31,202 bases of DNA. It comes from Macrostomum lignano. Lineage: Eukaryota. This document shows, piece after piece, positions 1 through 27,594 of this stretch. The translations under genes and the position numbers were made by a program. The stretch is from the NCBI GenBank assembly GCA_002269645.1, contig NIVC01004926.1:1-31202 (forward strand), written 5' to 3'. Numbering within the stretch: position 1 is the first letter of the stretch; every line of letters starts with the position of its first letter. Below the pieces are notes generated by a model. That model did no database searches. It saw only the letters and a list, made by a program, of their open reading frames with translations, and was not told where the DNA came from.

Positions 1-3000
1 CACTTATAACTCTACCAAAGATCGTTTTAGAAGAGTCAGATGTACACTAGATGATACTGATTCTGAAATAGTCTATAGGAGAACTGCAGACACATCTGAT
101 GCTCGCTTGCCGACGAGCTTTGAGCTTGAAGATTTTTGCTTAGCAATCTAGTTGCTGAGGAAGATGCCAGTAAACTGCTGATGACGTGTTGAAGTGGCTG
201 CTAACACGGCGCGATCATTCGGGATCATGCAGTAGGACGAGTGGCCAGTTCTGGTTCGATGGCCACCTTCCAATTGGCTGCTCGATTGTAAGGATCATCG
301 CTCCATGCGCAAACAGAGCATAGAGAGCTCGATGAGCAGTCAATTAAATGTGTCGACGAAGTAGCTATAGTAATTATTTTCAGAGAAAATGCATCATGCG
401 TCATCATACTTCCACTCTATTAACATTATAAAGGCTCATTGCTCCATCTCAAAACTTTTACTTCTAAGAGACGGAGGTAGTTTTTTGTTGCACCCGAATA
501 TACAGTCTCACAGAGGCCGGAGTAAAGCTTCATGACCAAACATACGACGCATTTTAAGGCTTTTCAATGCATCGCTCCTGACGAAATTTTTTAATCTATG
601 GGGGCAGCAGAACCTTTTTGTACTCATTTGTTTATCGCATCAGTTGAAATAAAAGCATACCCAAATGAACGTTTCAATAATGCCAGCGAAGGCTGCCTAC
701 GTTCAGGCAATTGAGATGACACTAAAAATTTATACGCAAACTGCAAGCACATCGAGCGTTGGTTTTTTCCAGCGATCCAACCGCTAATAAAGCTGGCCGC
801 AAATCCTTGTTCAGACGCTGCATTAATAGGCATCACCAAAGCCGCATTAGGAATTAAACAATAAGAGACGAACGACTATTAGAATCGATTGTTGCCTTCC
901 AATTAGCGGCTCGATTGAATGGATAATCGCTCCACGAGCAGAGCATAGGCGAATTGACGAGCAATTAATCGAAGAGGCAAGACATGTCACTATAACGCAA
1001 TAAAACAAGTACAAACGTACCTATAGCAAAAATGAAAAAGCAGCATACACAAGGACTCGTTGCTCAAAGAAACTCTACTGTAAAAAGCTCACTTTTACCT
1101 GACAGGTTTTAGACCTTACCCATATGAACGCTTTAACAGAGCCAGATGCATTCTAGTCATTGGCGAACCAATAAACTTGTACGCAAACTGAACACACATC
1201 TGCTGCTCTGGCAAACCGGATTCTTTCGTTTTGGTTATCCAATTACTAAGAAAGCTACCGCTGTGAGTAGTGTCTTCTGTAGCTACTGGTCTATTTGGAA
1301 TCAAGCAATAGGACGCGCTTCTACCACCGCTACGAACGCTGGGATCGATTGCGGCCTTCCAATTGGCTGCCCGATTAAAAGGTGAATCGCTCCAAGTGCA
1401 AAAAGTAGGCGAGGTCGATGAGCAATCAATTGAGACGGCTATAAGAGGGCATTTACGAGTTCTAGATGCTTTACAGATACTAATTAAACTTGATGCATTT
1501 TTTATGAAGCTAAAAATTGATTAATAAGACTCGTTGCTCCAATTTAATCCCAAAACATACCCAAATGTACGCTTTAACAAAGCCAGTTGCAATCCAGGCT
1601 TGGATATTACTGGCTCTGCTAGAACAAACTTGTAATTGAATTGCAGACACATTGGATTCTGTCTTGACTCTTCAGCGACAATCCAGCCACTAAGAAAGCT
1701 TCCAGTGTAAGCCTGTGCAGAAGAGCTACGTGATGACGTCATCGCTTGAGACCTAATCTTATTTGGAACGAGGCAATAGGAAGCAGAGCGACTATTGGAG
1801 TCAATTGCGACCTTCCAGTTGGCAGCTCGATTGAATTGACCGTCGCTCCATGTGCAAACATTTGGCAATTTTGAGGAGCAGTCAACCGAAACGCAGTGGG
1901 TAACTTATTTGAAAAAAGACATAAAAAACGGTTACAATTTCAGCTACCACAGGTGTGCTATCAAATTCAATAAACTTGGCAAGGCTCGCCTAAAGAAGCG
2001 GGAATAAACATGATGCAAAAACTCCTACCCAGAGACGCGTTTTAGCAGAACCAGTTTTGCCGCGCTGGCACTAGAAGAATGGAACGAATCCTTCACTCTA
2101 AATGCAAACTGAAGACACAATTGACCAGCACTAGGGTCTGATCCTGTCGTCCCTCCAGATACCCAAGCGCTATGAAATTCAGCAACTAGACTGACAGAAC
2201 TCCTGCCAGATGACATTGGACGCCTGATAGGAACCAAACAGTAAGACGAGAGTGCTGCGCGGCTAAAGCCAGGCGGCTCCAGCGTCATTTTCCAAGCGCC
2301 GTCTTTGTTGTCAAGATCGTTTCGCCAAGCACAGATTGCCGAAGTGCTCGAAGAACAAGCAAGACGTTCGTCAGCCATTTTAGAAGCTGAATTCATGTTC
2401 AGGCAAGCCTTACAAGATGAATTTTAAAGTACAAGCAATAACTAATGGCAAAGCTCATTGCTCCAAAGTAAACTAAAATAAATGGTTAACTGAATTTCTT
2501 TTACCCCCAGTTTCGCTTGAGCAAACTCAGCGACACCTCCCGCGGCGCCGTCAAGTAGCTGAACGTGAGGCAAACAGATGGCGACAACTGCTGCTCATTA
2601 TCAGATTTAGTGGCAGCAATCCAGTGACTCTCAAAGCGACCAGTCACTAAACTGTGCGGCTGAGGTCCGCTCTGAACCAAGCACAGGTGCGATCTGCCGC
2701 TGCCTAACGAGGACGCGTCGCTTGCAGCATCCAGGGCGGACACCCAGTGGGCGCCTTTATTGTCGAAATCATCACGCCAACTGCAGTGACCGCCAGCGTG
2801 GCAGGACAACTGTTCAAGCGTCGCTGAGGTGGAAAAACAGTCTAGCAGTTAAATAATTAGACATGCATCTCTTACAATATTTAAGCCAAAATTCCAAGGA
2901 CACTAACTGAAATTTTATGACAAAAACTCGTTGCTCCAGTTATTTCACGTTTTTTGCATTATTTTTATAGCCAACTCATACCCTCTGCTCCGTTTCAGCA

Positions 3001-6000
3001 AGCTTAATCCAGCTCCAGCAACAGTTGTCTCTTTACGAGTAGCCATCGGTTGATCAATTCGATAGGCAAACTGAAGACACATATCACCACGTCTGCCAGT
3101 AAGCCATTGGCTAACAAACCGAGCTACGGTTAAGGGTCGTGAGCTAGAGTAGCTAGAACCCGACAAAACGCTTGGCTCCGGCACTAGACATCGCGGTGAC
3201 TGAAATGCAGCCGACGGATGCAAGGAGGCGCGCCAATGAGCGTCAATATTATCCTGATCGTCGCGCCAAGTGCAAGGGCTAGCTGACGTACTTATGCACG
3301 TTAACTCGGGTACTGACACTGCAGCTAATGTACCGGCTAAAATTGATTTTCCGAAAGAGTCAATGTAGTCGTTAAAAATCTATTATAAACAGAAACTTTA
3401 GACAAGGCTCGTTGCATCAAATCAAATTAACTAAATATATCTTGACGGTTCAAGCATCGCTAAAATCATAAATCATACCCTAAACTGCGCTTTAATAGAT
3501 TCAATTTAGCTCGACCAGCAGTCCAGTAGACAAACTGAAGACACATCTGACCGCTAACTTTAGAAAATACCGTCGGACTGACAAATTGACCGCCTGCATC
3601 GCTACCAACAGAAGATGACGACACCGACTGAGGTACAAGACACAGGCCAGTGTTACCACCAGCAACTGCACCAACGTCTGCCAAGGTCCAGTGCAGACGA
3701 TTGAAAACGTCGTTGAGCCAGGCACAGTGACCTCGAGCTGTGCACTGCAGATCTATTTTAGTTGCTGCAAGAGAGCCATCTAATGTATAACCTGGACTAT
3801 ATAATTATCAGTTTATAAAGAAACTGCAAGCTAGTCAAGGCTCGTTGCTCGTGTTTGTTCGAACAAGTTTAAAATAACAGTAAGTAATCATGCAGCATCA
3901 TAACTAAGAGTACAAAAGAAACCAGCGCCATACCCTCGATTCCGTCGAAGCAGGTGCAGATCCGCACCACTAAACTCATCATCCTGCTGACTGATCAGAT
4001 AGCGAAAGTGCAAACAGCCCACTTTGCTGTCAGTAACAAAGCGGCTAACAAAACGAGCCTTAGTTACACGTTTAAGCGCCGACACATCTCTAATTAGGCA
4101 ATAGTGCGTTTGAAAGCGAGAACTCTCAGTAACAGTAGCCAACTGCCAGTGGGCGTCAGTATTGTAACTGTCATCTAGCCAATAGCAGCGGGATCCACTA
4201 TCGCAGTGCAATTGTTTTACAGCTTCATCAGATTGACCGGTAACTAGATTATTTTTCAAGCCATTATTTTACTAAATTATCAACAAAGAGTTTTGGTCAA
4301 TCAAGGTTTCGTTGCTCCATCCTATTCGAAAAAAAATTAAAGGGGAATCCTGTGCAATTTACCCAGAGTGACGTTTAAGCAACTGGAGCGATGGAGCTGA
4401 GGCTGCAGGTACCAACTGATACACAAACTGCAAGCAGGCGGACTCAATCGGTTCGGAGAGAAATAAGCTGACAAATCTAGCCGAAATTAAGGTCGCAGCC
4501 GTGACGCTAGGATTTATTGGAACCATGCAGAAAGCTGATCGGTGTAACGGAGAGGCTGGCGAAGACTGCACAGCAGCCAGCTTCCAGTGCGCTTTTGTAT
4601 TGTAGCCATTGTCATCGCTCCATAGACATGTATCAGCGCCATTGCTTTGACATTGCAAAGCTTTAATGTCAAAGCCACTAAATCTGCTGTTTGATAAACC
4701 AAAGGCTGAAATACAGTGAAAGCAGCAATCAATCACTGTAAAATCGTGTAACTGCTGAACTCCCAATTCTGACTAATTTTCTACAAGGCTCGTTGCAACA
4801 GGACATTAATAATGACTAATTATATAGCTATAATATTATTTTTCAATTCTCATACCCGGAATTGCGCTTCAACAATTGCAATTGACTCTGCCGATCAACT
4901 AGCTGGTAAGAGAACTGCATGCAGCCTTCGCTGACCGAACTGCTAGCAATGAATAGGCTAACAAATCTAGCCGATACAAGCTGTGCGCTAGTAGCACCGC
5001 CAGTGACAACTGCGCAATAACTGGTTCGATAAGTGGCAGCGGTGGCAGCGCTACCATCCGAATCGGCAATGCTAGCCAACTTCCAATGCGCCTCAGTATT
5101 ATAGCCGATATCGTTGAACCAATTACAAGATTGAGAACTACTGCCGAAACCGCTACCACTGCAGGTGAGCTGTTTAATAACCATTCGGTTAGCACTAAAC
5201 GACGAAGGTGAACTCGCTGCGCAATCGAAGCGTTGGTAATTATAAATAATTTTCTCAAGTTACCAGCCAAGCTAAGTACGAACACAATCAATTAAGCTAA
5301 GGCTCGTTGCTAAGCAAATGCAAAAAAACAGAACATAAATCAAAGCATTTTTCTAACCCCGACGATCGCCTTAGAAGAGCCAACACTGCGGCGGTATCGT
5401 CAACATCGCTTTTCCGTCGTTCTGGTCCATAGTCGATACGATAACTAAACGACAAGCAGAGTCCATTGCTGCTATCGCGGCCGCTGCGCACCCAGTCGCT
5501 TAACAACCGACCAGACACAGCAACCGACGGTGAAGGAATCAATCCAGCTGTGCACCAACTATTCGTAATTGCAGATCCGGTTCTAACTTTAACTGACGAG
5601 GCAGGAGAACCAGCGTTCAGACTGCTATGAATAGCAAATCGACGCCATTCTAATTCCCGATTATAACCGTCGCTTGACCAGCGATCCGTTGATAGGGACT
5701 CTTCTTCCATTACACTAGCTCCAGTACTGACTGCAACTGCCTCCAACACTGCATAAAGCATATTAATAATTATAAGCAGTAGACTTTATGTAGGAAATCT
5801 CGGAGCAGACTCGCTGCTCCATAAACTTATACAAGGACTAATTGCGATATCACTAAAAAAACTAAGCCACAAGTCCTGTTAGAGGTGGTAATGTTATGTT
5901 TTAACAATGCATGTCGTCAGGGATGCTTTCCGAGAAAAAAGGTCAATTGACTAAGTGATTTCAATCGTTAGAAAGATGCACGAGTTTGTGCTGTTGGCAA

Positions 6001-6945
6001 GAGACGTTTTTCCCCTTGAGTTAATAAAAACCTAAACTTACCCGTGATTATTCTTCAATAAAGCCAGTTGAGGTAAGTCAGTTTCGATAGAAGACTTCGA
6101 TGAATCTCCTAATTGATTGTTAGGAGTTACGTGATAAGCAAACGACAAGCACTGAGCACTCTGACGCCTGAAATTGCTACTAGCAGAATCAATCCACCAG
6201 GGACTCTGCAGTCTGGCTGAGCCGCCGTGCAGACAGACAGCCTGAGTGTTGAACTCTGTCAGATAGCGAATCTGCCAAGCACTGCCCGGTTTCCAGGCTA
6301 AATCTACCCAGTTGCAGAACTGAGAATCAGTTTTTGACGAACTTCTACTAGCAGCAGAATGTTGCTGTTCAAAGTCGCACGAAACTGACACCGAATCGTC
6401 CAAAACAGCCAGTGAATTTTGCACCCCTAGAGTAGGCGCAATCGATGCACGCTAGAGCAACAATTTTTGCAAACACATTGATCATGTACGAGCGTATGAT
6501 ATGAAAGAATCTCGTTAACTCCTAATCGCATTATAATAACTTAAAGCTACTGATTTTAAATATAAATTCAAGCAAATTAATTAGATAATTAATTATCATA
6601 TTTAGTTTTATGTTACAATGAATCACAAATTCGTGAAAAAATATTAAGATAAGATTATGTCATGCGCATCTTAGCCCCATTCAAAAAATTTTAAAGACAA
6701 TATTTTTAAACTACTCAGGCAACTCATTCGAAAAAAATTATTTTATCATATTAGCCAATTTTTCAACTATATAGAGAATGGAGCAACGAGCCTTGCCAAA
6801 TATTGAATACTTTATTTAAAATCTTTCATGTTTTGATTGGGTAATTTTAATAAGCAACGAAAGCGTTGCACTTACCTGGTACACCGACGATAAGTACTAG
6901 GAGGCAGACGATTGCTCCCGACAATCGAGGAGTTAAAGCAGACAT
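1..6945 (-). CDS. 5' part of a secreted/cell-surface MAM-like domain gene: one signal-peptide exon plus a cluster of >=13 mutually exclusive variable exons; downstream constant exons lie beyond the left edge
   Basis: Repeated exon signature C-x(n)-C-x-W...W...CL...F/L-x-S-x-W/F...CL(Q/S)F-x-Y...L-x-LL(K/R)R-x-x-G|GT recurs 13 times at ~440-680 nt spacing. All have phase-1 AG acceptors; V1-V12 have phase-2 GT donors. V1 reads CDFE...CNW...ARLQSPW...CLSFAY, matching the N-terminal part of the MAM consensus. Confidence 0.85.
16..364 (-). pseudogene. Variable exon V13, disrupted (>=3 frameshifts and TAG at the conserved Trp)
   Basis: Acceptor ttactatag|CT; IDC...VCAWSDDPYNRAANWKVAI, then SYCMIP, FLSN* (TAG 150-148), MCLQFSY and LTLLKRS with frame slips between blocks; GT donor at 15-14. 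Confidence 0.7.
431..447 (-). promoter_or_regulatory. Selector for V13
   Basis: Plus aaggctcattgctccat: 17 pairs, one G.U. Confidence 0.8.
661..989 (-). pseudogene. Variable exon V12, two apparent 1-nt deletions (pseudo-exon or consensus error)
   Basis: Acceptor ttgcgttatag|TG, donor GG|gtatgc; 329 nt (3n+2). The frame homologous to V10/V11 slips near 955 and near 870; restoring 2 nt gives 3n+1. Confidence 0.7.
1050..1065 (-). promoter_or_regulatory. Selector for V12
   Basis: Plus caaggactcgttgctc: 15 pairs, one bulged nt. Confidence 0.78.
1120..1438 (-). CDS. Variable exon V11
   Basis: Acceptor ccctcttatag|CC, donor GG|gtaagg, 319 nt = 3n+1; IDCSSTSPTFCTWSDSPFNRAANWKAAI...SYCLIP...GSFLSNW...MCVQFAY...LALLKRSYG. 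Confidence 0.85.
1526..1541 (-). promoter_or_regulatory. Selector for V11
   Basis: Plus aagactcgttgctcca: 16 pairs, one G.U. Confidence 0.8.
1561..1903 (-). CDS. Variable exon V10
   Basis: Acceptor cttttttcaaataag|TT (AAG, less common), donor GG|gtatgt, 343 nt = 3n+1; VDCSSKLPNVCTWSDGQFNRAANWKVAI...SYCLVP...GSFLSGW...MCLQFNY...LALLKRTFG. Confidence 0.82.
1976..1988 (-). promoter_or_regulatory. Selector for V10
   Basis: Plus ttggcaaggctcg: 13/13 to the 5' half of the docking site. Confidence 0.78.
2029..2386 (-). CDS. Variable exon V9
   Basis: Acceptor atgaattcag|CT, donor GG|gtagga, 358 nt = 3n+1; LAC...ICAWRNDLDNKDGAWK...SYCLVP...AEFHSAW...LCLQFAF...LVLLKRVSG. Confidence 0.82.
2446..2465 (-). 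promoter_or_regulatory. Selector for V9
   Basis: Plus tggcaaagctcattgctcca: 20 pairs, two G.U. Confidence 0.8.
2505..2823 (-). CDS. Variable exon V8
   Basis: Acceptor tttttccacctcag|CG (in-phase alternative start 2841), donor GG|gtaaaa, 319 nt = 3n+1; LSCHAGGHCSWRDDFDNKGAHW...LCLV...GRFESHW...VCLTFSY...LSLLKRNWG. Confidence 0.85.
2923..2938 (-). promoter_or_regulatory. Selector for V8
   Basis: Plus aaaactcgttgctcca: 16 pairs, two G.U. Confidence 0.78.
2982..3336 (-). CDS. Variable exon V7
   Basis: Acceptor tcaattttag|CC (in-phase alternative starts at 3324 and 3318), donor GG|gtatga, 355 nt = 3n+1; LTC...PCTWRDDQDNIDAHW...RCLVP...ARFVSQW...MCLQFAY...LSLLKRSRG. Confidence 0.85.
3403..3415 (-). 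promoter_or_regulatory. Selector for V7
   Basis: Plus caaggctcgttgc: 13/13. Confidence 0.8.
3479..3779 (-). CDS. Variable exon V6
   Basis: Acceptor ttatacattag|AT, donor GG|gtatga, 301 nt = 3n+1; LQCTARGHCAWLNDVFNRLHW...GLCLVP...GQFVSP...MCLQFVY...LNLLKRSLG. Confidence 0.85.
3836..3850 (-). promoter_or_regulatory. Selector for V6
   Basis: Plus caaggctcgttgctc: 15/15. Confidence 0.8.
3934..4243 (-). CDS. Variable exon V5
   Basis: Acceptor aataatctag|TT, donor GG|gtatgg, 310 nt = 3n+1; LHCDSGSRCYWLDDSYNTDAHWQLA...HYCL...ARFVSRF...CLHFRY...LHLLRRNRG. Confidence 0.85.
4302..4320 (-). promoter_or_regulatory. Selector for V5
   Basis: Plus caaggtttcgttgctccat: 12/12 core plus caagg, with one mismatch and one bulge. 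Confidence 0.78.
4363..4705 (-). CDS. Variable exon V4
   Basis: Acceptor tgtatttcag|CC, donor GG|gtaaat, 343 nt = 3n+1; LQC...TCLWSDDNGYNTKAHWKLA...AFCMVP...ARFVSLF...CLQFVY...LQLLKRHSG. Confidence 0.88.
4784..4796 (-). promoter_or_regulatory. Selector for V4
   Basis: Plus caaggctcgttgc: 13/13. Confidence 0.8.
4856..5216 (-). CDS. Variable exon V3
   Basis: Acceptor ttgcgcag|CG, donor GG|gtatga, 361 nt = 3n+1; QLTC...SCNWFNDIGYNTEAHWKLA...SYC...ARFVSLF...CMQFSY...LQLLKRNSG. Confidence 0.85.
5299..5311 (-). promoter_or_regulatory. Selector for V3
   Basis: Plus aaggctcgttgct: 13/13. Confidence 0.8.
5358..5748 (-). CDS. Variable exon V2 (lacks the first two Cys)
   Basis: Acceptor ctttatgcag|TG, donor GG|gttaga, 391 nt = 3n+1; RWSSDGYNRELEW...NSWC...GRLLSDW...LCLSFSY...LALLRRSSG. 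Confidence 0.8.
5808..5822 (-). promoter_or_regulatory. Selector for V2
   Basis: Plus gactcgctgctccat: 15 pairs with docking, two of them wobble. Confidence 0.75.
6042..6426 (-). CDS. Variable exon V1 (most canonical MAM-like)
   Basis: Acceptor ctactctag|GG (phase 1), donor GG|gtaagt (phase 2), 385 nt = 3n+1; VQNSLAVLDDSVSVSCDFE...CNW...AVCLHGGSARLQSPW...CLSFAY...LALLKNNHG. Confidence 0.85.
6511..6522 (-). promoter_or_regulatory. Selector for V1 (weak)
   Basis: Plus ctcgttaactcc vs docking ctcgttg-ctcc: one G.U pair plus one bulge; ~85 nt upstream of the V1 acceptor. Confidence 0.5.
6778..6799 (-). promoter_or_regulatory. Putative docking site (transcript: UUGGCAAGGCUCGUUGCUCCAU), ~76 nt downstream of the constitutive exon donor
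   Basis: Plus strand atggagcaacgagccttgccaa is the only full copy I found in this orientation and is the reverse complement of the motif repeated once in each variant-exon intron. Confidence 0.8.
6876..6945 (-). CDS. Constitutive first coding exon: signal peptide MSALTPRLSGAIVCLLVLIVGVP(G)
   Basis: ATG at 6945-6943; 23 codons plus 1 nt; basic residue then hydrophobic core; consensus donor CCAG|GTAAGT at 6875 (phase 1), matching the phase of all variant acceptors. Too short for the ORF track. Confidence 0.85.
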
Positions 6946-7864: not shown

Positions 7865-10800
7865 TTATTTTTGAAGATCCACAACATTCTGCAAGGCGTA
7901 TTTCAGCTTCTCAACGGCCAACAGGCAGTCCTGACGGGTCAGATCGTTGTGAGTGAGCAATCTAATGATGGTCTCAGAGACGGCGGGAGCTCGTAAACGA
8001 ATCTTGCAGGAGTCGGTTGGCTGGAGAAAATGAAACAGGATTCGATGTGAATTATTAGTTCTGGAGCTGGTGGTTGGTGCTGGATTTCGTGCTTGTGGAA
8101 TTCACACCCGGATGTACATGTCTGATGGGGATTAGGAAGTTATTAAAAGGCCGTTGTACAACCCTGTGTGAGTGTGTGTATGATGAAGCTCCATGCAGCC
8201 CTCGTAGGAGTATATATATTATTCTTATCATCAATATAGAAGCCCTGGAATATGTAAATTTTAGAATTAAGAAAGTGATTTGGGGTAGAATATTAACATA
8301 ACGATCTTTGAAACAAACTAATTAAGATAGTAACTAATATAATATAATAAACGAGTTAACTATTTCGACATACAACAGGCGTGTGTGTAGGTTATGAGGA
8401 GACAAAAAAGTTCAACCCAATTACTCTCCAGACTGCAGTGCAATGATGCCTATACAGTAAACTAGAGATCATCAAGGACTACTGAAAAGAAACTAATTAA
8501 TAATTAAACATATCTGTTTAAACAGTCTACCGATTAAGAGATCAAAGCTTTTTAAGACTGGCTTACCTCTTCAATAATAGTCTGCAGTTGGTCGATACTT
8601 ATTGGAGCATCCTTAGTAAGTTTAATTTGCATTACATTGGTCTGCGGCTTCTCAAACACCAGCCAGTCGGGTAGGTTGACCTGAGACACACCTGTGCGGA
8701 ATGAGATTGAGAAAAACTTTATTGCATTTTGACCACAATAACACATATAACTAGGTTTGGAAGTATCCTATAGCTCTTTGTGTCACTCTGTAGCACTTTG
8801 TAGCCTTCTATAGCTCTTTGTAGCATTCTTTAGCTCTGCGTAGCCTTCTGTAGCTCTTTGTAGCATTCTTTAGCTTTTTGCAGCACTCTGTAGCTCTTTG
8901 TAGCACTCTGTACTTCTTTGTGGTATCCTGTGGATTTTGTAGCACTCTGTAGCTCTTTGTATCACTCTGTAGCTCTTTTTAGCACCCTGTAGCTCCGTGT
9001 AGCACTCTGCACCCTGTAGCTCTGTGTAGCACTCTGCACCCTGTAGCTCTGTGTAGCACTCTGCACCCTGTAGCTCTGTGTAGCACTCTGCACTCTGTAG
9101 CTCTGTGTAGCACTCTGCACCCTGTAGCTCTGTGTAGCACTCTGCACCCTGTAGCTCTGTGTAGCACTCTGCACTGTAGCTCCGTGTAGCACTCTGCACT
9201 CTGTAGCTCCGTGTAGCACTCTGCACTCTGTAGCTCCGTGTAGCACTCTGCACCCTGTAGCTCCGTGTAGCACTCTGCACTCTGTAGCTCTGTGTAGCAC
9301 TCTGCACCCTGTAGCTCTGTGTAGCACTCTGCACTCTGTAGCTCCGTGTAGCACTCTGCACCCTGTAGCTCCGTGTAGCACTCTGCACTCTGTAGCTCCG
9401 TGTAGCACTCTGCACTCTGTAGCTCTGTGTAGCACTCTGCACCCTGTAGCTCTGTGTAGCACTCTGCACTCTGTAGCTCCGTGTAGCACTCTGCACCCTG
9501 TAGCTCCGTGTAGCACTCTGCACTCTGTAGCTCCGTGTAGCACTCTGCACCCTGTAGCTCTGTGTAGCACTCTGCACCCTGTAGCTCTGTGTAGCACTTT
9601 GCACTCTGTAGCTCTGTGTAGTACTCTGCACCCTGTAGCTCTGTGTAGCACTTTGCACTCTGTAGCTCTGTGTGGCACCCTGTAGCTCTTTGTAGCACTC
9701 TGCACTCTGTAGCTCTTTGTAGCACACTGTAGCTCTTTGTAGCACTCTTTAACTCTTTGTAAAACCACGTGGCTCTTTGTAACAAATACAACTCTTTGTA
9801 ACATTTTGTAGCTCTTTGTAGCACTCCAGCTCTTTGTAGAACCCAATAGCACTTTTTGGAATTCTGTAGCTCTGTGTAGCATCATGTGGCCCTCATCTTT
9901 TCTACCAAAATGACTATCATTTTTAATTGCCTTAAAATTCTTTTTGACTAAACTAAAAGTGAATAAAAATTGGCACAATTTCCAACTAACCTGAATAGAT
10001 CAGCTGGGCATTGGCGTGATCAGCTGACAGGGTGTCCTTGGCTACGTCCAGCGAATAGCTGGCCGCAGCGGCCAAAAGTCCAGGCTGTCTGGCGGCGCCG
10101 CCGAGCGCTTTGCGAATTCGACGGCAACTGAAATTATTTTGACAGGCGCCAAAAATTTAGAACAAGAAACTACTAAGTTATTTTTAACTCCGTACTCAGG
10201 CTTGATGGATTTAATTTTGAACTTTTCCGACTCATGCCAGCTTGGAATTACAATTCTGAGAGTTATTCAGTGTACACGTAGAGTACATAGACAGCACTTA
10301 CTAACTAATAGTATCAGCATCCGATGCGATGCAGGACCCGACGGGTGCGCCGAGACCCTGGAAAAAAACAGAGAAATGAATTCATGCAGAAAAACTGCTA
10401 GGAATTCTTAGTTGCATCTACGAGATCAGGGGGCGGCGAATTCTAACCCGCGAAGCCTCTCTATTCGGCGCTCGGGTCTTTTGAAACTTCACAATAGCAA
10501 TCCGACCCGCTCAAGGCTTGGCTCTTCTCAGCTCCCTTCTCTCATCTTTTTTCTCTCTCGTCTCCTCTCTTCTCTCCTCTCTCCTCTCTTCTCTCCTCTC
10601 TCCTTTCTTCTCTTCTCTCTTTTGTCTCTCCTCTCCTCTCACCCCTCTTTTCTTTCTCGTCTCGTCTCTTCTCTTCCCTCTTTGTCTCCTCTCCTCTCTT
10701 CTCTCCCCTCTTTTTCTCTCTCTCTCCTCTCCTCTCTTCTCTCCCCTCTTTATTCTCTCTCGTCTCCTCTCTTCTCTTCCCTCTTTTTCTCTCTCCTCTC

Positions 10801-12870
10801 CTCTCTTCTCTCCCCTCTCCTCTCTTCTCTTCCCTCTTTTGTCTCTCCTCTCCTCTCTCCCCTCTTTTTCTTTCTCGTCTCTTCTCTTCCCTCTTTGTCT
10901 CCTCTTTTCTCTTTTCTCCCCTCTTTTTCTCTCTCTCTTCTCTCCCCTCTTTTTCTCTCTCGTCTCCTCTCTTCTCTCTCCTCTCCTCTCTTCCCTCTTT
11001 TGTCTCTCCTCTCCTCTCTTCTCTCCCCTCTTTTTCTCTCTCGTCTCCTCTCTTCTCTCTCCTCTCCTCTCTTCTCTCCCCTCTTTTTCTCTCTCGTCTC
11101 CTCTCTTCTCTCTCCTCTCCTCTCTTCTCTCTCCTCTCCTCTCTTCTCTTCCCTCTTTTCTCTCTCCTCTCCTCTCTTCTCTCTCGTCTCCTCTCTTCTC
11201 TCTCCTCTCCTCTCTTCTCTCCCCGCTTTTTTTCTCTCGTCTCCGCTCTTCTCTCCCCTCTTTTTCTCTCTCGTCTCCTCTCTTCTCTTCCCTCTTTTTC
11301 TCTCTCGTCTCCTCTCTTCTCTCTCCTCTCCTCTCTTCTCTCCCCTCTTTTTCTCTCTCTCTTCTCTCCTCTCTTCTCTCCCCTCTTTTTCTCTCTCTCT
11401 TCTCTCCTCTCTTCGCTCCCCTCTTTCTCTCTCTCGTCTCCTCTCTTCTCTCTCCTCTCCTCTCTTCTCTTCCCTCTTTTGTCTCTCCTCTCCTCTCTCC
11501 CCTCTTTTCTTTCTCGTCTCTTCTCTTCCCTCTTTGTCTCCTCTCCTCTCTCCTCTCTTCTCTCCCCTTTTTTCTCTCTCTCTTCTCTCCTCTCTTCTCT
11601 CCCCTCTTTTTTCTCTCTCGTCTCCTCTCTTCTCTCCCCTCTTTTTCTCTCTCCTCTCCTCTCTTCTTTTCCCTCTTTTGTCTCTCCTCTCCTCTCTCCC
11701 CTCTTTTCTTTCTCGTCTCTTCTCTTCCCTCTTTGTCTCCTCTCCTCTCTCCTCTCTTCTCTCCCCTTTTTTCTCTCTCTCTTCTCTCCTCTCTTCTCTC
11801 CCCTCTTTTTTCTCTCTCGTCTCCTCTTTTCTCTTCCCTTTTTTGTCTCTCCTCTCCTCTCTCCCCTCTTTTCTTTCTCGTCTCTTCTCTTCCCTTTTTT
11901 GTCTCTCCTCTCCTCTCTCCCCTCTTTTCTTTCTCGTCTCTTCTCTTCCCTCTTTGTCTCTTCTCTCCTCTCTTCTCTCTCCTCTCTTCTCTCTCCTCTC
12001 TTCTCTCTCCTCTCTTCTATCTCCTCTCTTCTCTCCCCTCTTTTCTTTCTCGTCTCTTCTCTTCCCTCTTTGTCTCTTCTCTCCTCTCTTCTCTTTCCTC
12101 TCTTCTCTCTCCTCTCTTCGATCTCCTCTCTTCTCTCCCCTCTTTCCTCTCTTCTCTCCCCTCTTTCTATCTCCTCTCTTTCTCCCTTCTCTTCCCTCTC
12201 TCCTCTTCTCCCCTCTTTCATCCTCTATTCTCTCTTACATAGCCCGAAGCTATATGTAAAAGAAACCAGCTTGCCAACCCCTGAACTATATCCTCAGATT
12301 CTCACCTTTGAGAAACAAATAGTCACTGAACTGACATATCTGCCATACTCAATAGGGTCGATACCCAAAGCCACGGCTGCATTGATCAGTCTGGCTCCAT
12401 CAACGTGCAGCTTCATGCCGTACCTGTTGCAGAGCTCTCTGGCCTGCGGATGTCGGAGTGCATAGGGAAATTTATTGCATAGGAGCGATAGCGGACAGGC
12501 AGACATTGGCTAGAGGAGGGAAGAGCCAGTTTAGCAGTAAACGCGTCTCTAACTCTCACGCTACGACCCCTACCCTGGTTCCACTCCGTGTGAGGCCACA
12601 TCATTTGGGGCTTGTGGTGCACAAAAATTGTTATTGTATGTGCTGTTCAGCCATTCACGCCCATGAGGGCCAGCCACCAAAACCTGACAATTTAAAATAC
12701 AAATGTGGGACCCCTGTACACCCAGTGTGAGCGTATGTGAGTGCTTGCCTGCGTAAAGTATTCATGTCTTGTATGGATTGACAATAAAATTGATAATTGA
12801 CTAAAACATATAGACAGACAGAAAACTAAGACTTTGTTACAGACAGACTCCCAGAGAGTTAATTACAGAA

Positions 12871-12921
<51 letters not shown>

Positions 12922-12985
12922 AAACTAAGACTTTGTTACAGACAGACTCCCAGAGAGTTAATTACAGAAAGACAGACAGACAGAA

Positions 12986-13036
<51 letters not shown>

Positions 13037-15135
13037 AAGACAGACAGACAGAAAGACAGACAGACAGAAAGACAGACAGACAGACAGACAGAAAGACAGA
13101 CAGACAGACAGACAGTCAGACAGACAGACAGACAGGAAGACAGACAGAAAGACAGACAGACAGACAGACAGACAGAAAGACAGACAGACAGACAGACAGT
13201 CAGACAGACAGACAGACAGGAAGACAGACAGACAGACAGGAAGACAGACAGACAGACAGACAAACAGACAAAGACACCGATACGCATCCCCTCACCTCGG
13301 CAAAGTAAGCCACGGGAAGCACTTTGCCACCGGCCAGTCCGTGCGTGTTCTCCAGGCACAGCGCCCTGGTGATTGGATAGTGCGGGTCCTCCGCATTGGT
13401 GCGGATCAGGCGCCGGCACTGCTCCAGGCAGAGGGTGCCGTTAGGATTGGTGCTGACCGCCCTGTGGTGCGCGCCGGCGAATGAGGCCAAACTGCCCTAT
13501 GGAGAAAATGTTTATTTGTTTGTTATAAAAACATTGAGCTTCTATAAAGACCTGAGGAGACGACAAAATTGTTTCGAGACAAAGACCTCAAGCAGTGTCC
13601 TTAAGCGATGCAAGACTTTAATACAGGTAATCAAATGAGACAAAGACCTTAGTACAGGTAGGTTAGCGAGACAAGGGCCTCAATTCTGGAAGCAGAGCAA
13701 AAATAAAGACCTTAGCGATGAAAATAGAGTAAAACAAAGACCTAAATAATGGAAGATTAAGACTTCAAGTACTAAAAGTAGTGCAACACAAAGATCTTGG
13801 CACCGGAAGTATACTAGACATAGGCACCAATGGAAGTAGAGTGAACAAAGACCTCAGTACCGGAAGTAGTGCAAAACAAAGACCTTAGCACTAGAAGTAC
13901 TGTAAGACAAAGACAGCAATGGAAGTAAAGTAGACAAAGACCTCAGTACTGGAAGTAGTACAACATAATGAACTTATCAATGGAAGTGGAGTAGACAAAG
14001 ACCTTAGCACCGAAAGTAGTGCAAAACAAAGACCTTAGCAATGGAAGTAGAGTAGTCGAGTAGACAAAGAGGTAAGTACTCGAGATTAGAGCAAGACAAA
14101 TATCTTTGTCAGGCTAGTAAAATATCAAATCCATACATTTTTGCATGTATATATACAGCTATTCAAGCAGTTCAAATAGTTAATAGAATACCTGTTCGTA
14201 TAGATGAATATGACACAGATCGCCCAAGATAACTTCTGAACCTCGCTCCCTACAGTGCGACATCACGGGCAGTAAGTTGCCCATAGTGCCGCTAGTGACA
14301 AATAGTCCAGCTTCTTGGCCAAGCATTTTAGCGACTCGCGACTCCAGTTCTGTTCATTTTTTAGAAATAAAATTAGACATGTAAGCACATTAGTTTATCT
14401 TCTAAAAGCGCTGAAGTTGCTTCGAAAACAGTGGAGGCCCTGAACTAAAAGTGACATCCCTGACACTAAAAGTAGGTCTCTCGCACTAAAAGCGGGGTCT
14501 CTAACATTAAAACTGGCGTCTCTGACACTAAAAGTGGAATCCTTGACATTAAAACTGGCGTCTTCTCTGACACTAAAATGGGCATCTCTGAGCTCTGACA
14601 CTAAAAGTGGCGTCTTCTCTGACACTAAAAGTGGCGTCTTCTCTGACACTAAAAGTGGCATCTCTGACACTAAAAGTGGCGTCTTCTCTGACACTAAAAG
14701 TGGCGTCTTCTCTGACACTAAAAGTGGCATCTCTGACACTAAAATGGGCATCTCTGACACTAAAATGACGTCTTTTCTGACACTAAAACTAAAAGTGGCT
14801 TAAAAGCACAGGATTTGCACTAATAAATACACATGCCAGAAAAACTCACCCATCACAGTGGTATTCTCGCCAAACACATCGTCTCCATAGCTAACTGATT
14901 CAATCATTGCTTTCATCATACCTGGTGTTGGTTTGCTCAGCACATCGCTACGAAAATCTACTATTCTAGCTCCAGCATCGTCACTAATGCTGGTTTGCCT
15001 GTGCTTTTGTTTTTCTCCACTATTGTATTGATAGCTAAGCAATCGCTTAGCAAAAGAAATTAAGCAAGCTGGTGTTACACTGGGTGCATTTAGATGGGTA
15101 ATTGTCTGACTAAAAAATGTGACTGCCTTTAGCAT
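7865..15135 (-). CDS. THA1: Low-specificity L-threonine aldolase (PLP-dependent, GLY1/LtaE family), 8 exons, 418 aa
   Basis: Exons 15135-14850, 14349-14192, 13496-13296, 12443-12306, 10357-10302, 10127-9991, 8691-8567 and 8020-7865 join in phase with GT-AG sites (1257 nt). Family motifs: [37 protein letters not shown]|GLGAPVG (PLP Lys), RKALGG..RQ, IRLLTH. Confidence 0.93.
8770..9870. repeat. Minisatellite, 27-nt unit GTAGCACTCTGCAC(C/T)CTGTAGCTC(T/C)GT with 20-nt variant flanks (aldolase intron 6)
   Basis: Direct tandem periodicity; 9-aa repeats in ORF track; degenerate related copies near 7700-7780. Confidence 0.95.
10427..12283. mobile_element. Non-autonomous hAT-like DNA element (copy 1) containing ~1.7 kb CT-rich simple repeat
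   Basis: Ends CAGGGGGCGGCGAA...GCTTGCCAACCCCTG are imperfect TIRs; first ~100 nt align with the element at 30876; CAGGGG-type TIRs are typical of hAT/Charlie-like elements. Confidence 0.7.
12810..13272. repeat. (GACA)n microsatellite with an embedded duplicated spacer block
   Basis: Direct; block AAAACTAAGACTTTGTTACAGACAGACTCCCAGAGAGTTAATTACAG present twice. Confidence 0.95.
13570..14100. repeat. Degenerate ~30-35 nt tandem repeat (ACAAAGACCT...GGAAGTAG)
   Basis: Recurrent ACAAAGACC and GGAAGTAG cores. Confidence 0.8.
14440..14797. repeat. Minisatellite, 21/24-nt units TCTGACACTAAAAGTGGC(GTCTTC/ATC)
   Basis: Direct tandem periodicity. Confidence 0.92.
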
Positions 15136-18962: not shown

Positions 18963-20293
18963 TTTACTGACTAGCATAGATGTTTATTGTTGCGCCACAT
19001 ATTCGTCCAAGGTCGAATCAAGGACGACTTAAGTAGACGACTTAAGTCGTCCTTGGGTCGAATTCTAAAGAAATCTTAGAAAAAAACATATAAATTTTTG
19101 CTTTTAAAGAACAATAAAAACATAACAAAGAAGACTTTAAAGTATAAAAATAGAACTATGTATTCAACATTAATTAATAAAGACTGTTTCTTATTATATA
19201 ATAAATTATAAACATGCATTTTTATTTGCACTTGTTTCTTATCTGTATTTGTATGCTGCAGCGGTAATTTAGTTTGTTCTTCATCAGAAATTTTAGACGA
19301 TCCTTCTATCTAGTGGTCCCTTATCAATCACTAGTACAAATTTTATCACCAATAAAACGCGTAATTCGTAAAGTGCCAAACAAAATAATGTCTAAAAGCT
19401 AAATGTTAGAAAGTAGAATATTTCACAATTCAAATGTAAACACCAATTTCAGAAAATCTTGTCCTTTTTGACGAGCTTCTGCTAAAAGCACAGACTAAGT
19501 TTTACAAAAGGCATAGTGTTACAGTTTATAGACTTTAGAAATTCACAAGATTATCAAGATGCTGCCAGTCAATTGGAGTACCACAATTACTATAAATTAG
19601 TACTTTGTGAAGTTAGTGTTGTGCTTTTAATCTTAATGATGTTGCATTAGGCCATGGATGAATCTCTAATCTACTTTCCTGATGCTGCAAAAAGAAAATA
19701 TGGAAATATTGTTTGGATAATAGTATGGATATCTATTATAAATTAGAGATAAATATTTTTCTTAAAAATGTATTTATTTTCTTGGATGGTTTTTGGGAAT
19801 TTATAGGCTTATAGGCTTGTATTTAGTGCTTAATTTAGAGAAAAGATTAAGTTAGAAGACAAAAGAATATTTGAGTATAGCAACCAATAAGAGAGGTTTA
19901 GCAAGTGACTTTTAGCCAATCTTAAAGCTTTAAGAACATTAGCTATGTGTCTAATTCTAAGTTTGAAATTTTTTGGCAAACACCATAGATTCATTACATT
20001 AGCTACTTGTTCAAAAATGGAAAACATTTTTAATTTTGTAAAGAATATATACTTAGAGATTTCAAACTCTTAAGAAATAGATATAGATATATAATATACT
20101 CTTGTAAAATTTTGGTTATAGCAAAACTATATTATAAATAACCAATAAAAATAAAAAAGCTTTGTTCATAAGTGAATTTAAAAAAAAAATTCTTTTTAAT
20201 AATAATTATATTTTCATAAAGACTCAAATTTTTATTTATCAATTTTTAATTTATAATAAAAAATTTATTTTTTATGCAGCACAGTCAGTAAGC

Positions 20294-21837
20294 ATGGAGA
20301 GCAACAGTGGAACAGTATATCTAGTTCATAGCAGCAATGACTCAAACGATACTGCTACAATTAGAACACTTTTTAATCGCTGGTTCTTAGTGTTAACATT
20401 GGGTTTGTTGAATGTATCCAATGCTGCCCTATGGATAACTTATTCAGCCATTGCTGACTATACTCAGTTGTTCTATAATGTAACTGCTGATGGTGTTAAC
20501 TGGCTGGCTCTTGTCTATCCTCTTGCTTCACTGGTTTTTGGCTTGCCAACTGCATATTGTCTGGATAGGTAAATACTTGCAAAATTTATCATTTATTTAT
20601 TGTCTATTTGACTAATACCCTTGAGGAGCAATTTGCTTTCATGAGAATTCCCCTCAAGAACACTACCATCTCGATAATTCCCCTTGAGCACATGACTATC
20701 CAAATGATTCCCTTTGAGCACATGACTATCCAAATAATTCCCCTTGAGCACATGACTATCCAAATGATTCCCCTTGAGCACATGACTATCCAAATGATTC
20801 CCCTTGAGCACATGACTATCCAAATAATTCCCCTTGAGCACATGACTATCCAAATAATTCCCCTTGAGCACATGACTATCCAAATAGTTCCCCTTGAGCA
20901 CATGACTATCCAAATAATTCCCCTTGAGCACATGACTATCCAAATAATTCCCCTTGAGCGCATGACTATCCAAATGATTCCCCTTGAGCACATGACTATC
21001 CAAATAATTCCCCTTGAGCACATAACTATCCAAATAATTCCCATTTGATGCCTGTGTACATTTTATTGAAAATTATTTTTATGACTGACACTGGAATTGC
21101 TATTAACAGAAGCCAACTCTCCATAATCTTCCCCACAACACAGACTTGGCGTTCGCACCGGTCTTCTAATTGGCGCCATTTTCAGTGCATCTGGTGGCGC
21201 CATGCGGTACGCTAGCGCCATACTAGCTCAACCATCATTCTCTCTGGCATTAGCTGGCCAAATTACAGCTGCCATTGCTCAGCCATTCTTCATGTTTTCT
21301 CCAACTGCTGTTGCGTCAGAATTTCCTGTCAGCCAGCGGGCTACTGCTAACACACTGGGCAGCATGTCCAATCCATTGGGAATTCTGCTCACTAATATCC
21401 TATCGCCTCTGCTAGTGAAATCGAAAACTGACCTGCCGTTAGTCAGTTTAGTGTACTTTATAGCTGCGGCAGCTGCTTTGCTGTTCTCTGTTGTTACGTC
21501 AATTTTTACTAGACAAGCGCCTGCGCCAGGTGTTGCTGGATCTGAGCTGCATCAATCTGCTGCTGCTCAGCATCTCACATTCTGGTTGAGTATTCGTGCC
21601 TGTTTAACTAATCGAGCTTTCGGATTACTGTTGCTAGCCGTAGGCGCTGGAATGGGCCTGTTCACGGCATTGTCAGCCCTGCTGGAGCAGATTCTGTGTC
21701 CGTATGGTTACTCAGATCAGTTTGCTGGCATCTGCGGCGCTGTGCTGATTGGTGCTGGACTGGTTGGGGCCGGGGTGGCCGGAGCTGTTGCAGACTATAC
21801 GAAGAGATTTATAACACTGTCTAAGGTGAGACGACTG

Positions 21838-21913
<76 letters not shown>

Positions 21914-21978
21914 CAGATAGATAGATAGATAGATAGACAGATAGATAGATAGATAGATAGACAGATAGATAGATAGAC

Positions 21979-22017
<39 letters not shown>

Positions 22018-22018
22018 C

Positions 22019-22084
<66 letters not shown>

Positions 22085-22140
22085 GTAGGTAGGTAGATAG
22101 ATAAATATATAGACAGATAGATAGGTAGATAGATAGGTAA

Positions 22141-22176
<36 letters not shown>

Positions 22177-22186
22177 ATAGATAGAC

Positions 22187-22221
<35 letters not shown>

Positions 22222-23116
22222 CAGATAGACAGATAGATAGATAGATATGCAAAAGGCAGCTTCAAACTGCAAACCACACACACGGAAATATTGAAGAACG
22301 TTAGTTGTCGAATATTCAGTAACCGATATTTCGGCCCGGACTGGGCCTTCGTCAGGGTTTATTTATTCGGGTTTAAAAACAAATATATTGGCTGTGAAGT
22401 TATTTTAACATAATTTCAATATATACATGCAACGTTTGGGGGTGCACTGAGCAGTGTTGAGTAAAGATGTGTACGTATAATTAGTTAAAAACGTGAGTTG
22501 AAGCACGCTGATTGGTTAAAGTCTTGCAGCTAAAGCCTTGCACAAAAATAAATATGTTAGGTGCTATAGAAAACCAGATTTAAAGCGTAGAAGTGTATGA
22601 CTAAGCATCTTGAAAAGTTCAACAAATAAGTTAATTACGCCCGTAGAAAAAAACAAATATTAAATTAATACAGAGCACTGAGAACTTTGCATAAATAAGT
22701 GTAAATAATTAGATGTAACTATTGAATTCATATACAGTAATTAATTGGGTAGCCAGACAGGCCACGAGAGACGCAGTTGGCGGCGTCTGGTCACAGATCG
22801 CCGCCTGCACAGCCCCTGGTCACAGGCGACTGGGCACTGCCGATCAGTTGAAGCTAGATTGTCAGTAGTAGTAGCACTAGTAGTTGCAGTAGTAGTAGTA
22901 GTTGTTGTTGTAGTAGTAGTAGAAGTAGTAGTAGTAGAGTAGTAGTAGTCGTAATCGTAGTCGTAGTCGTAGTAGTGTCGTACATTTAATATTTGCAGCT
23001 GCAGAAATAGTACTCTTGCTTATCCCGAGTAGATTTTTAGCGGAAAATATAGGTAGACTTTTTGTTACCTATTTGGTTTGTTTTTGGTAGATAGATAGAT
23101 AGATAAATAGATAGAC

Positions 23117-23151
<35 letters not shown>

Positions 23152-23152
23152 C

Positions 23153-23202
<50 letters not shown>

Positions 23203-23239
23203 GTAGGTAGATAGATAAATATATAGACAGATAGATAGG

Positions 23240-23278
<39 letters not shown>

Positions 23279-23450
23279 TTAGATAGATAGATAAATAGAT
23301 AGGTAGATAGATAAATATATAGACAGATAGATAGATAGATAGGTAGATAGATAGATAGATAGATAGATTAGATTAGATAGATAGATAGATAGACAGATAG
23401 ATAGATAGATAGGTAGATACATAAATATATAGACAGATAGATAGATAGAT

Positions 23451-23508
<58 letters not shown>

Positions 23509-24209
23509 CAGACAGATAGATGGTTGATAGCCGTGATTGGTGAAATTTTCGACATTCTGCAATTAGTGGGATTTCTGGGCTGTAATTCCTTGGCCCACCC
23601 CAACCCCACTCTCAGGTATCCTTCAGCTTGGCCGCGGCCACCTCAGCCGCATTCGCCGCCTTGATTGGCCGGCCAAATTCTCACGCTGCCGTAGTCTCCT
23701 CGATTGCGGCATTTGGCGCATTCGGTTTCGCATTCTATCCGATAGCATTGGAACTGGGCGTAGAAGCTACTCATCCTGTTGGAGAGGCGGTGAGCACTGG
23801 CCTTCTTGTGCTAGCTGGTCAGTTGGCCTCCGTGGTGCTCATGGTCGCTGGCCAGGTGTTGGCGACTCCTACAGCCACGACAGCGCTGACAGCATGTGCT
23901 GTACCGCCTCCTATGGACTACAGCCTGGCCTGTCTAGTGTTCGCTGGTATGGCTGCAGTGTTGGCCATTCTCTACACGCTAATGTTTAACACAGATTATA
24001 AGCGTCAAGAGGCTGAGAAACGTCAATTAGATGCGGCTAAAGCTGCCGCAGTTCTATTAGCGAGGCTGCTGCTTCGATCGGGCATGCTCAGGTTGGCTCT
24101 GGGCCGGATGAGCAGGCTTGAAGACATGTTAATATGTCAACTCTTTGGTGCTTTCTATTGCGGACTTGTTGGTTTAGATTTTACCGTATGCTTATTCTTT
24201 GATCATTAA
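20294..24209 (+). CDS. SLC49A3: MFS transporter of the SLC49A3/MFSD7 (FLVCR-related) type, 3 exons
   Basis: Exons 20294-20568, 21144-21825 and 23616-24209 join in phase. Motifs RWF...[38 protein letters not shown]...[31 protein letters not shown] and FNTDYKR match my recollection of SLC49A3. The true stop may be 24121 (see findings). Confidence 0.88.
20615..21045. repeat. Minisatellite, 27-nt unit ATTCCCCTTGAGCACATGACTATCCAA (core), ~14 copies
   Basis: Direct periodicity within SLC49A3 intron 1. Confidence 0.95.
21840..22248. repeat. (GATA)n microsatellite
   Basis: Direct; begins just after the exon 2 donor. Confidence 0.97.
22321..22359 (-). ncRNA. Minimal type I hammerhead ribozyme motif (Penelope-like element remnant)
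   Basis: Minus strand AACC-CUGACGA-A-GGCCC(agucc)GGGCC-GAAA-UA-UC-GGUU: both core boxes, 5-bp stem II, 4-bp stem I, palindromic AUAU stem III, AUC cleavage triplet. Confidence 0.6.
22860..22980. repeat. (GTA/GTT/GTC)n trinucleotide simple repeat
   Basis: Direct. Confidence 0.9.
23088..23520. repeat. (GATA)n microsatellite
   Basis: Direct. Confidence 0.97.
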
Positions 24210-26594: not shown

Positions 26595-27081
26595 CACTCA
26601 GATCTTATCAGTGAGGATTATAGATATCTTAATTATGCGAGCTATAAGTACTCATAAAAATTCATTATTTGAAGAAATAGTTTCGCTATTTTTGCTGCGC
26701 TGCATAATATTTCTCTCTCGCGCAGATTTGAATTTCGTAGATTTATTCTCACGTCAGGTGAAATTAAAATCAAAGATGCAATTATTTGCACAAATTTGTA
26801 TACAAGCACCAATCGTTTGTAATATCATGGATCATATTCAATATTTAAATAATAAATAATCGGATATTTTCAGGACGTCACTCGTTATAGATTTTATTTT
26901 CGTTGGATTTGTAATAAATGCCTGACCGATGTACTTTTATTTTATTGAAATACAATACTATCGTGTTGCATTGAGATGATTTTTGTATTTTTATAAATAT
27001 TTATAGTTTTTTTAATTACTTATTAGGCTATTAATAAACTTCACACTGACACCCATCTGTCAGTTGGCACTGACTCATAAC

Positions 27082-27555
27082 CTGACACATTACTGTCAGC
27101 ACTGACCCACACCCTGACACTTTTCTGTCAGCACTGACCCACACCCTGACACTTTTCTGTCAGCACTGACCCACAACCTGACACTTTTCTGTCAGCACTG
27201 ACCCACAACCTGACACTTTTCTGTCAGCACTGACCCACACCCTGACACTTTTCTGTCAGCACTGACCCACACCCTGACACTTTTCTGTCAGGACTGACCC
27301 ACAACCTGACACTTTTCTGTCAGGACTGACCCACAACCTGACACTTTTCTGTCAGGACTGACCCACACCCTGACACTTTTCTGCCAGCACTGACCCACAA
27401 CCTGACACTTTACTGTCAGCACTGACTCACAACCTGACACTTTACTGTCAGCACTGACTCACAACCTGACACTTTACTGTCAGCACTGACTCACAACCTG
27501 ACACTTTTCTGTCAGCACTGACCCACACCCTGACACTTTTCTGTCAGCACTGACT
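27082..27555. repeat. Minisatellite, 32-nt unit CTGACACTTTTCTGTCAGCACTGACCCACA(C/A)C, ~15 copies, each with a CTGACA/TGTCAG inverted repeat
   Basis: Period 32 measured between 27082 and 27114. Confidence 0.95.
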
Positions 27556-27594
27556 CGCATCCTGACGCTCAGCACCAACTCAAACATTCCTGGC

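Follow-up and report, generated by a model that had tools for sequence, protein, structure and literature searches.

How does a gene that carries a long row of alternative exons, none of a length divisible by three, yield a translatable messenger RNA (mRNA)? This question is raised by contig NIVC01004926.1 of the flatworm Macrostomum lignano, which we analysed over its full 31,202 nt (the window). Positions 1–6945 hold, on the minus strand, the 5′ part of a gene for a MAM-domain protein with a tandem array of homologous variable exons. A first-pass annotation of this stretch had proposed that the reading frame enforces the inclusion of exactly one of them. Following the gene into a sister copy, we found a second array behind the first, and among the exon combinations tested, an open reading frame (ORF) results only when exactly one exon of each array is used. 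As the best explanation overall, we consider it quite probable that this MAM gene inherited arrays of asymmetric phase, from which exons would be chosen by RNA pairing, with the frame rule serving as a fail-safe. The term “enforces” goes too far in this context: the frame logic makes wrong mRNAs untranslatable, but it makes no splice choice.

Taken alone, the frame rule contributes little: it follows in textbook fashion whenever exons of asymmetric phases are duplicated, and it is already known to be common among mutually exclusive exons. The more notable result is the gene itself, which appears to be undescribed.

Two arrays of variable exons in one gene

The contig belongs to Mlig_3_7, a redundant assembly of the M. 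lignano genome which was annotated on the basis of RNA-seq data with StringTie, TACO and TBONE (PMC5730564). The gene was assigned to the minus strand because a selector motif (see below) is repeated on this strand and occurs as its reverse complement once. Only the 5′ part is present on NIVC01004926.1: the contig stops within the gene and, therefore, the exon following the first array falls outside the window. Further copies were reached via the neighbouring aldolase gene, going from the members of the protein cluster P0001 to GenBank proteins and from there to their contigs. This led to the sister loci L003 and L005 on the 349-kb contig NIVC01000034.1 and L004 on NIVC01004127.1. The window shares 98.6% identity each with L003 and L004, which are 99.96% identical to one another. 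The sister-copy gene spans positions 3001–19006 of L005, corresponding to NIVC01000034.1:57,318–73,323, and supplied the parts of the gene beyond the window.

The signal peptide is encoded by exon 1, whose end lies in phase 1, as the first-pass annotation had stated for the constant exon (donor CCAG/gtaagt; slashes mark exon boundaries). Its translation corresponds, with the exception of one L/M difference, to the first 23 residues of PAA93052.1 (P0142; 422 aa, BOX15_Mlig029915g2), an RNA-seq-based protein model of the sister copy. After a first intron of 449 nt, the window contains the intact variable exons v1–v11 (array 1, Table 1), and their number, phases and coordinates had been given correctly. 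All eleven run from phase 1 to phase 2, with a phase-1 AG acceptor, a phase-2 GG/gt donor (GG/gtaag, gtatg, gtagg or gttag) and one open frame each. Their lengths range from 286 to 391 nt, are all 3n+1 and differ by multiples of three. The translations are homologous (23–48% identity) with invariant Trp, Cys, Phe and Leu columns; v2 lacks the two N-terminal Cys. The introns between the variants measure, in order, 293, 141, 150, 119, 169, 142, 158, 118, 125 and 122 nt and are all of the GT-AG type. Of the range of 118–296 nt given before, the minimum is right and the maximum has to be corrected to 293 nt. For v2–v11, the acceptor was taken as the best phase-1 AG just upstream of the conserved domain start.

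When compared with the criteria for mutually exclusive exon clusters of Pillmann et al. 2011 (PMC3228551), array 1 consists of homologous tandem exons of similar length with conserved splice-site type and reading frame. Regarding the use of one exon per transcript, the single RNA-seq-based model, P0142, contains v1 only and, from the second array, c2-3 only.

Near the contig end, the window contains two further exons, v12 and v13, whose frame is broken. The sister copy has v12 intact (331 nt) and comprises altogether 14 intact array-1 variants, all of them 3n+1. In the window, v12 and v13 deviate from the sister exons by 1-nt indels in short homopolymers, and indels compared with the sister copy accumulate over the final kilobase of the contig. 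Judged from the sequence, assembly errors may be a likelier cause of these frame breaks than a conversion into pseudo-exons.

Downstream of array 1, the annotation had expected a constant exon starting in phase 2. The phase was predicted correctly, but in the sister copy this position is taken by a second array of variable exons (L005 10709–16903). Array 2 features 15 intact and about four degenerate exons of 148–205 nt with the pattern SC...C..LW....W.....DFK. They run from phase 2 to phase 0 and are, again, all 3n+1, with the first nucleotide completing a GG/N glycine codon. The constant exon comes behind this array and starts in phase 0; it is followed by a 105-nt intron and the last exon, which encodes a transmembrane helix and a cytoplasmic tail. 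In P0142, the signal peptide is followed by v1, c2-3 and the constant part, so that each array contributes exactly one exon.

One exon of each array keeps the frame open

The sister gene allows 14 × 15 one-plus-one combinations, and 210 of 210 gave a full ORF. By contrast, none of the aberrant combinations tried, about 3,000 in total, was translatable. On the side of array 1, these were skips (0 of 15 open), doubles (0 of 1365), triples (0 of 364) and quadruples (0 of 1001), and on the side of array 2 skips (0 of 14) and doubles (0 of 105). Compensating combinations, in which zero exons of one array were joined with two of the other, were likewise all closed (0 of 196), as was the skipping of both arrays. 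The earlier statement that the inclusion of two variants or of none shifts the frame was therefore borne out for the whole gene.

The reason lies in stops within the exons themselves. While v1–v11 contain no stop in their own frame, there are 6–15 per exon in the frame that follows one extra variant, the first of them within 1–18 codons, and 2–8 in the third frame. By arithmetic alone, the inclusion of four, seven or ten variants would restore the downstream frame; “exactly one” holds only because internal stops kill these products as well. Aberrant combinations usually run into a stop hundreds of nucleotides before the last exon junction, and for array-1 doubles the distance is at least 515 nt. 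Such faulty mRNAs would be removed by nonsense-mediated decay (NMD), and the frame rule could in this way act as a passive fail-safe for splicing mistakes.

RNA pairing as candidate mechanism of exon choice

If the frame does not choose, another mechanism has to. Steric hindrance between neighbouring splice sites was rejected, as already suspected in the first-pass annotation: it needs a distance of less than about 50 nt from donor to branch point, in contrast to introns of 118–293 nt between the variants, and even the 105-nt intron behind the constant exon is spliced constitutively in P0142. An incompatibility of U2- and U12-type sites was rejected too, since all introns are GT-AG and splice-site types are not mixed.

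A more promising candidate is found in the introns. The 15-nt motif GGAGCAACGAGCCTT occurs in 12 copies on the minus strand and as one exact reverse complement at 6780–6794, within the first intron; together, there are 13 selector-like matches compared with 0.6 expected by chance. This single site, which matches the repeated selector exactly in reverse complement, forms the core, AAGGCTCGTTGCTCC, of a putative docking site. Selectors lie 28–60 nt upstream of the acceptors of v2–v11, and the predicted duplexes with the docking site reach –31 to –43 kcal/mol, compared with means of –17 to –22 kcal/mol for shuffled sequences. The selector of v10 deviates by pairing with the 5′ half of the docking site and not with its core. 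Array 2 appears to be organised alike, with a docking site (TTTGGCAGCGGGGAAGACTTCAAGGTACC) between v14 and c2-1 and with selectors complementary to it in the introns that separate the c2 exons; in most of these, the predicted duplexes reach –31 to –51 kcal/mol. Competition between such docking/selector pairings is most likely what would select one exon per array.

The core of the array-2 docking site, GACTTCAAG/GTA, repeats the sequence in which the c2 exons end, together with their 5′ splice site. Consequently, array-2 selectors might also mask the donors of the c2 exons.

A membrane protein with a composite MAM domain

The gene product is predicted to be a single-pass membrane protein of type I topology with one extracellular MAM domain. 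In Pfam, the MAM profile (PF00629; cut-off 26.4 bits) recognises P0142 with 32.3 bits and P0206, a homologue from Dicrocoelium, with 29.1 bits; single variant exons match the first ~90 profile positions below the cut-off. A profile of the family searched against the PDB retrieved the MAM domains of neuropilin-1, neuropilin-2, MDGA1 and meprin alpha. Similarly, an AlphaFold model (mean pLDDT 64.6; 84–92 in most strands) gave as top Foldseek matches the MAM domains of meprin, neuropilin-1, LAST-MAM and PTPRK. In this model, the first seven strands come from array 1, two or three subsequent ones from array 2 and the final two from the constant exon. An array-1 exon would encode the N-terminal two-thirds of the MAM beta-sandwich.

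Origin of the frame rule and alternative explanations

The rule goes back to an ancestral exon of asymmetric phases (1 to 2, 3n+1) that was duplicated in tandem, with every duplicate inheriting phase and length as a consequence. The shared phase of the variants is therefore expected from exon duplication and does not call for eleven independent coincidences. In line with such an inheritance, the orthologous exons of Paragonimus heterotremus have the same phases and are 3n+1 as well (334, 388, 436, 415 and 427 nt). We also counted out-of-frame stops across the eleven exons after shuffling synonymous codons. No excess was found in the double-inclusion frame (107 observed, 111 ± 6.6 shuffled) or in the other frame (51 observed, 53.7 ± 4 shuffled), and after every shuffle, each variant still had one stop or more. 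The frame rule looks passive and inherited, since out-of-frame stops are not enriched.

Several points count against the explanation that we favour. Nothing in the stop counts points to selection for a frame check. After a skip of array 2, the stop is reached within the last exon, 90 nt beyond the final junction, and some array-1 skips likewise place it in the last exon; for these products, the classical 50-nt rule of NMD would not apply. In flatworms, moreover, NMD is known solely through UPF1–3 homologues in Echinococcus (PMC5440512). On the side of exon choice, v1 has no selector, and the best duplex in its upstream region (window 6455–6760) equals the mean of the shuffles. Transcript-level support is limited to the boundaries of v1, by way of P0142, and the acceptors of v2–v14 were derived from the sequence. 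Finally, several variants contain cryptic AGs in phase 2, where ab initio predictors chained exons in frame, as seen in the models P0001, P0124 and P0125.

The first of these points also speaks for the most serious alternative. According to it, the 3n+1 lengths are a neutral by-product of duplication without any surveillance, RNA pairing and repressors choose the exons alone, and faulty mRNAs are either never made or not degraded by NMD. The stop counts are as this predicts, and so are the Paragonimus phases, for which simple inheritance is enough. Of the human mutually exclusive exon clusters, 60% have lengths not divisible by three as well (PMC5740500). On the other hand, none of the aberrant combinations can be translated, whatever the origin of the lengths. 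Frame shift with subsequent NMD is listed among the mechanisms for mutually exclusive exons, and exon-joining reads were found in 22% of the human clusters of the non-3n type (PMC5740500). The 67-nt exons of U2AF1 are a worked example, in which the joined products are NMD substrates (PMC5224494). We regard the absence of any surveillance as unlikely, if still deserving attention.

Could v1 be the only functional variant, with v2–v14 being decaying relics of duplication that are never spliced in? The sole transcript-based model seen uses v1, and v12 and v13 are broken in the window. The comparison of the window with the sister copy bears on this point. Substitutions amount to 0.44% in exons compared with 1.26% in introns (p = 0.0009), i.e., a 3-fold difference. 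The introns show 35 indel columns, whereas the exons v1–v11 have a single indel, of 3 nt, and hence none that shifts the frame. Nonsynonymous and synonymous differences between window 1120–6945 and L003 stand at 12:5, small counts with a ratio near neutral, which would suit decay. Nevertheless, in all eleven variants (14 in the sister copy) the frame has stayed open over 95–130 codons, next to other frames with 2–15 stops, and the Cys/Trp framework, GT-AG sites and complementary selectors are retained. The breaks in v12 and v13 are the 1-nt homopolymer changes at the contig end mentioned above and are absent from the sister copy. Taken together, the sequence comparison points to a protected frame with residues that may vary freely or are diversifying, and the decay of all variants except v1 is very doubtful.

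Variable exons could also serve as separate 5′ exons with an own promoter or spliced-leader acceptor, in the style of protocadherins or chelicerate sDscam genes. This would be compatible with the good AG acceptor at every variable exon and with the trans-splicing of ~39% of M. lignano genes (PMC5730564). However, the variable exons lack a start codon with a signal peptide behind it. A signal peptide is encoded solely by exon 1, whose end has the phase required by all variants and which is joined to v1 in P0142, and the docking site lies in the intron of this exon. Such an arrangement is accordingly highly improbable. The constitutive inclusion of all exons, giving a protein of many tandem half-MAM repeats, is hardly credible although P0001, P0124, P0125 and trematode and cestode models chain several variants, as any two variants joined at their real boundaries shift the frame and stop within 1–18 codons, the chained models need internal cryptic acceptors which delete the conserved N-terminal Cys, and those of Macrostomum are moreover fusions with the adjacent aldolase and BUD13 genes.

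Distribution in flatworms

A profile of the eleven variants gave 95 matches among 1.84 billion proteins. Ten of these matches were identified by name; one is P0142, and the others come from the trematodes Paragonimus, Schistosoma and Dicrocoelium and the cestodes Spirometra and Dibothriocephalus. Several of the homologues (P0127–P0148 and P0206; locus L006) chain three to six N-terminal MAM halves ending in ...LLRRxxG. These chained trematode and cestode models are probably mispredicted arrays of the same kind, and Dicrocoelium P0206 looks like a correct one-plus-one isoform. For Macrostomum itself, the UniProt entries A0A1I8GW98, A0A1I8J1G4 and A0A1I8GP08 fuse the aldolase with several variants, and A0A1I8J1G4 includes BUD13 in addition. 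A 9-mer count in the Paragonimus introns revealed no shared selector motif; this is a crude test, and selectors may still be present there. Homologue searches with the signal peptide plus v4 gave no match, those with the eleven concatenated variants retrieved only the fused misprediction P0001, and those with the aldolase led directly to no new Macrostomum entries. Exact look-ups of the v2 ORF, P0001 and P0206 found none on record.

We lean slightly towards the broader view that flatworms (Macrostomum, trematodes and cestodes) share a hypervariable surface receptor with a single MAM domain, two adjacent 3n+1 docking/selector arrays and, in M. lignano, ~210 isoforms, a Dscam-like system that would have arisen independently outside the arthropods.

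Comparison with known systems

The closest parallel is the exon 6 array of Dscam1, in which tandem homologous exons also encode part of one extracellular domain each, one upstream docking site is combined with a selector per variant, and the gene has more than one variable array. Dscam exon 6 variants of ~124 nt are 3n+1, too. In contrast to Dscam1, an Ig/FN3 protein, the gene described here belongs to Platyhelminthes and codes for a single MAM domain with a transmembrane helix, both arrays fall within one domain and the array-1 exons are long (286–391 nt). Moreover, 14 × 15 exons allow for 210 isoforms instead of tens of thousands, no selector precedes v1, and the docking/selector system is known from sequence and predicted pairing.

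Regarding the frame, the gene resembles exons 3/Ab of U2AF1 and the human non-3n clusters, where the inclusion of both or neither exon results in a frame shift and stops. The human clusters policed by NMD are mostly pairs and their NMD was shown experimentally, whereas the MAM gene has two adjacent arrays of 14 and ~15 exons, for which NMD would be expected. With meprins, neuropilins, RPTP mu/kappa and MDGA, the protein shares the MAM fold, the Cys framework and the type I membrane topology; unlike these, the flatworm protein has no other extracellular domain. To our knowledge, no MAM protein has a domain that is assembled from alternative exons. In the literature covered, which did not extend to subscription journals, no mutually exclusive exon cluster was described for a flatworm or for a MAM gene.

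For the annotation of flatworm genomes, the frame rule is of practical use, as it would expose the annotated multi-MAM proteins of Macrostomum, Paragonimus, Schistosoma, Spirometra and Dibothriocephalus as chained mispredictions. Furthermore, variant–variant junction reads with and without a knock-down of UPF1 would offer a simple read-out of NMD and of how faithfully the exons are spliced, in a flatworm species for which RNAi and transgenesis are available. If the gene is borne out, Lophotrochozoa possess a docking/selector system with two arrays of mutually exclusive exons, in a receptor family common to major parasites of humans and livestock. It could then be tested whether a stochastic isoform choice of the Dscam type evolved repeatedly, and what the variable MAM domain recognises.

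Features of the window and neighbouring genes

Table 1. Exons, pairing elements and neighbouring genes. Positions refer to the window unless L005 is given; v, variable exon of array 1.
Feature	Position	Strand	Length (nt)	Selector	Remarks
Exon 1	6876..6945	–	70		ATG at 6945; signal peptide MSALTPRLSGAIVCLLVLIVGVP; 23 codons + 1 nt
Array-1 docking site (putative)	6777..6807	–			ATTCAATATTTGGCAAGGCTCGTTGCTCCAT; ~70–100 nt downstream of exon 1 donor
v1	6042..6426	–	385		phase 1 to 2; used in P0142
v2	5358..5748	–	391	5806–5820 (core)	phase 1 to 2; donor GG/gttaga
v3	4856..5216	–	361	5299–5313	
v4	4363..4705	–	343	4785–4799	
v5	3934..4243	–	310	4304–4318	
v6	3479..3764	–	286	3837–3851	
v7	2982..3336	–	355	3404–3418	
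v8	2505..2823	–	319	2923–2937	
v9	2029..2386	–	358	2450–2464	strongest predicted duplex, –43.5 kcal/mol
v10	1561..1903	–	343	about 1965–1990	shifted selector, GGCGAGCCTTGCCAAGTTTATTGAAT
v11	1120..1438	–	319	1526–1540	
v12	661..989	–	329	1052–1066	3n+2; two 1-nt deletions in short C runs
v13	16..364	–		431–445	several small indels compared with intact 349-nt sister exon; contig end
Constant exon	L005 18248–18335				phase-0 start; LIFEGTIPANN...
Threonine aldolase gene	15135–7877	–			upstream neighbour; ~900 nt between its end and the MAM-gene ATG
MFS-type transporter gene	20162–24209	+			(AGAT)n and (TAGA)n arrays in introns
261-aa ORF	27595–28380	+			C-terminal hydrophobic segment; no Pfam match

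Both the MFS-type transporter gene and the 261-aa ORF are found on the sister contig as well. An Rfam scan of the window detected no known RNA family. Very large simple or tandem repeats occupy positions 10532–12236, 8982–9682, 12865–13270, 24237–26615 and 27067–27566. They comprise ~1.7 kb of (TC)n/CTCTCTT within an intron of the aldolase gene (GC skew –0.9), 26 units of a 27-nt minisatellite, an (ACAG)n tract, 2.4 kb of a 30/62-nt satellite and a repeat of 32 nt. The repeats of the window are consistent with the tandem-repeat content of 15% reported for the M. lignano genome.

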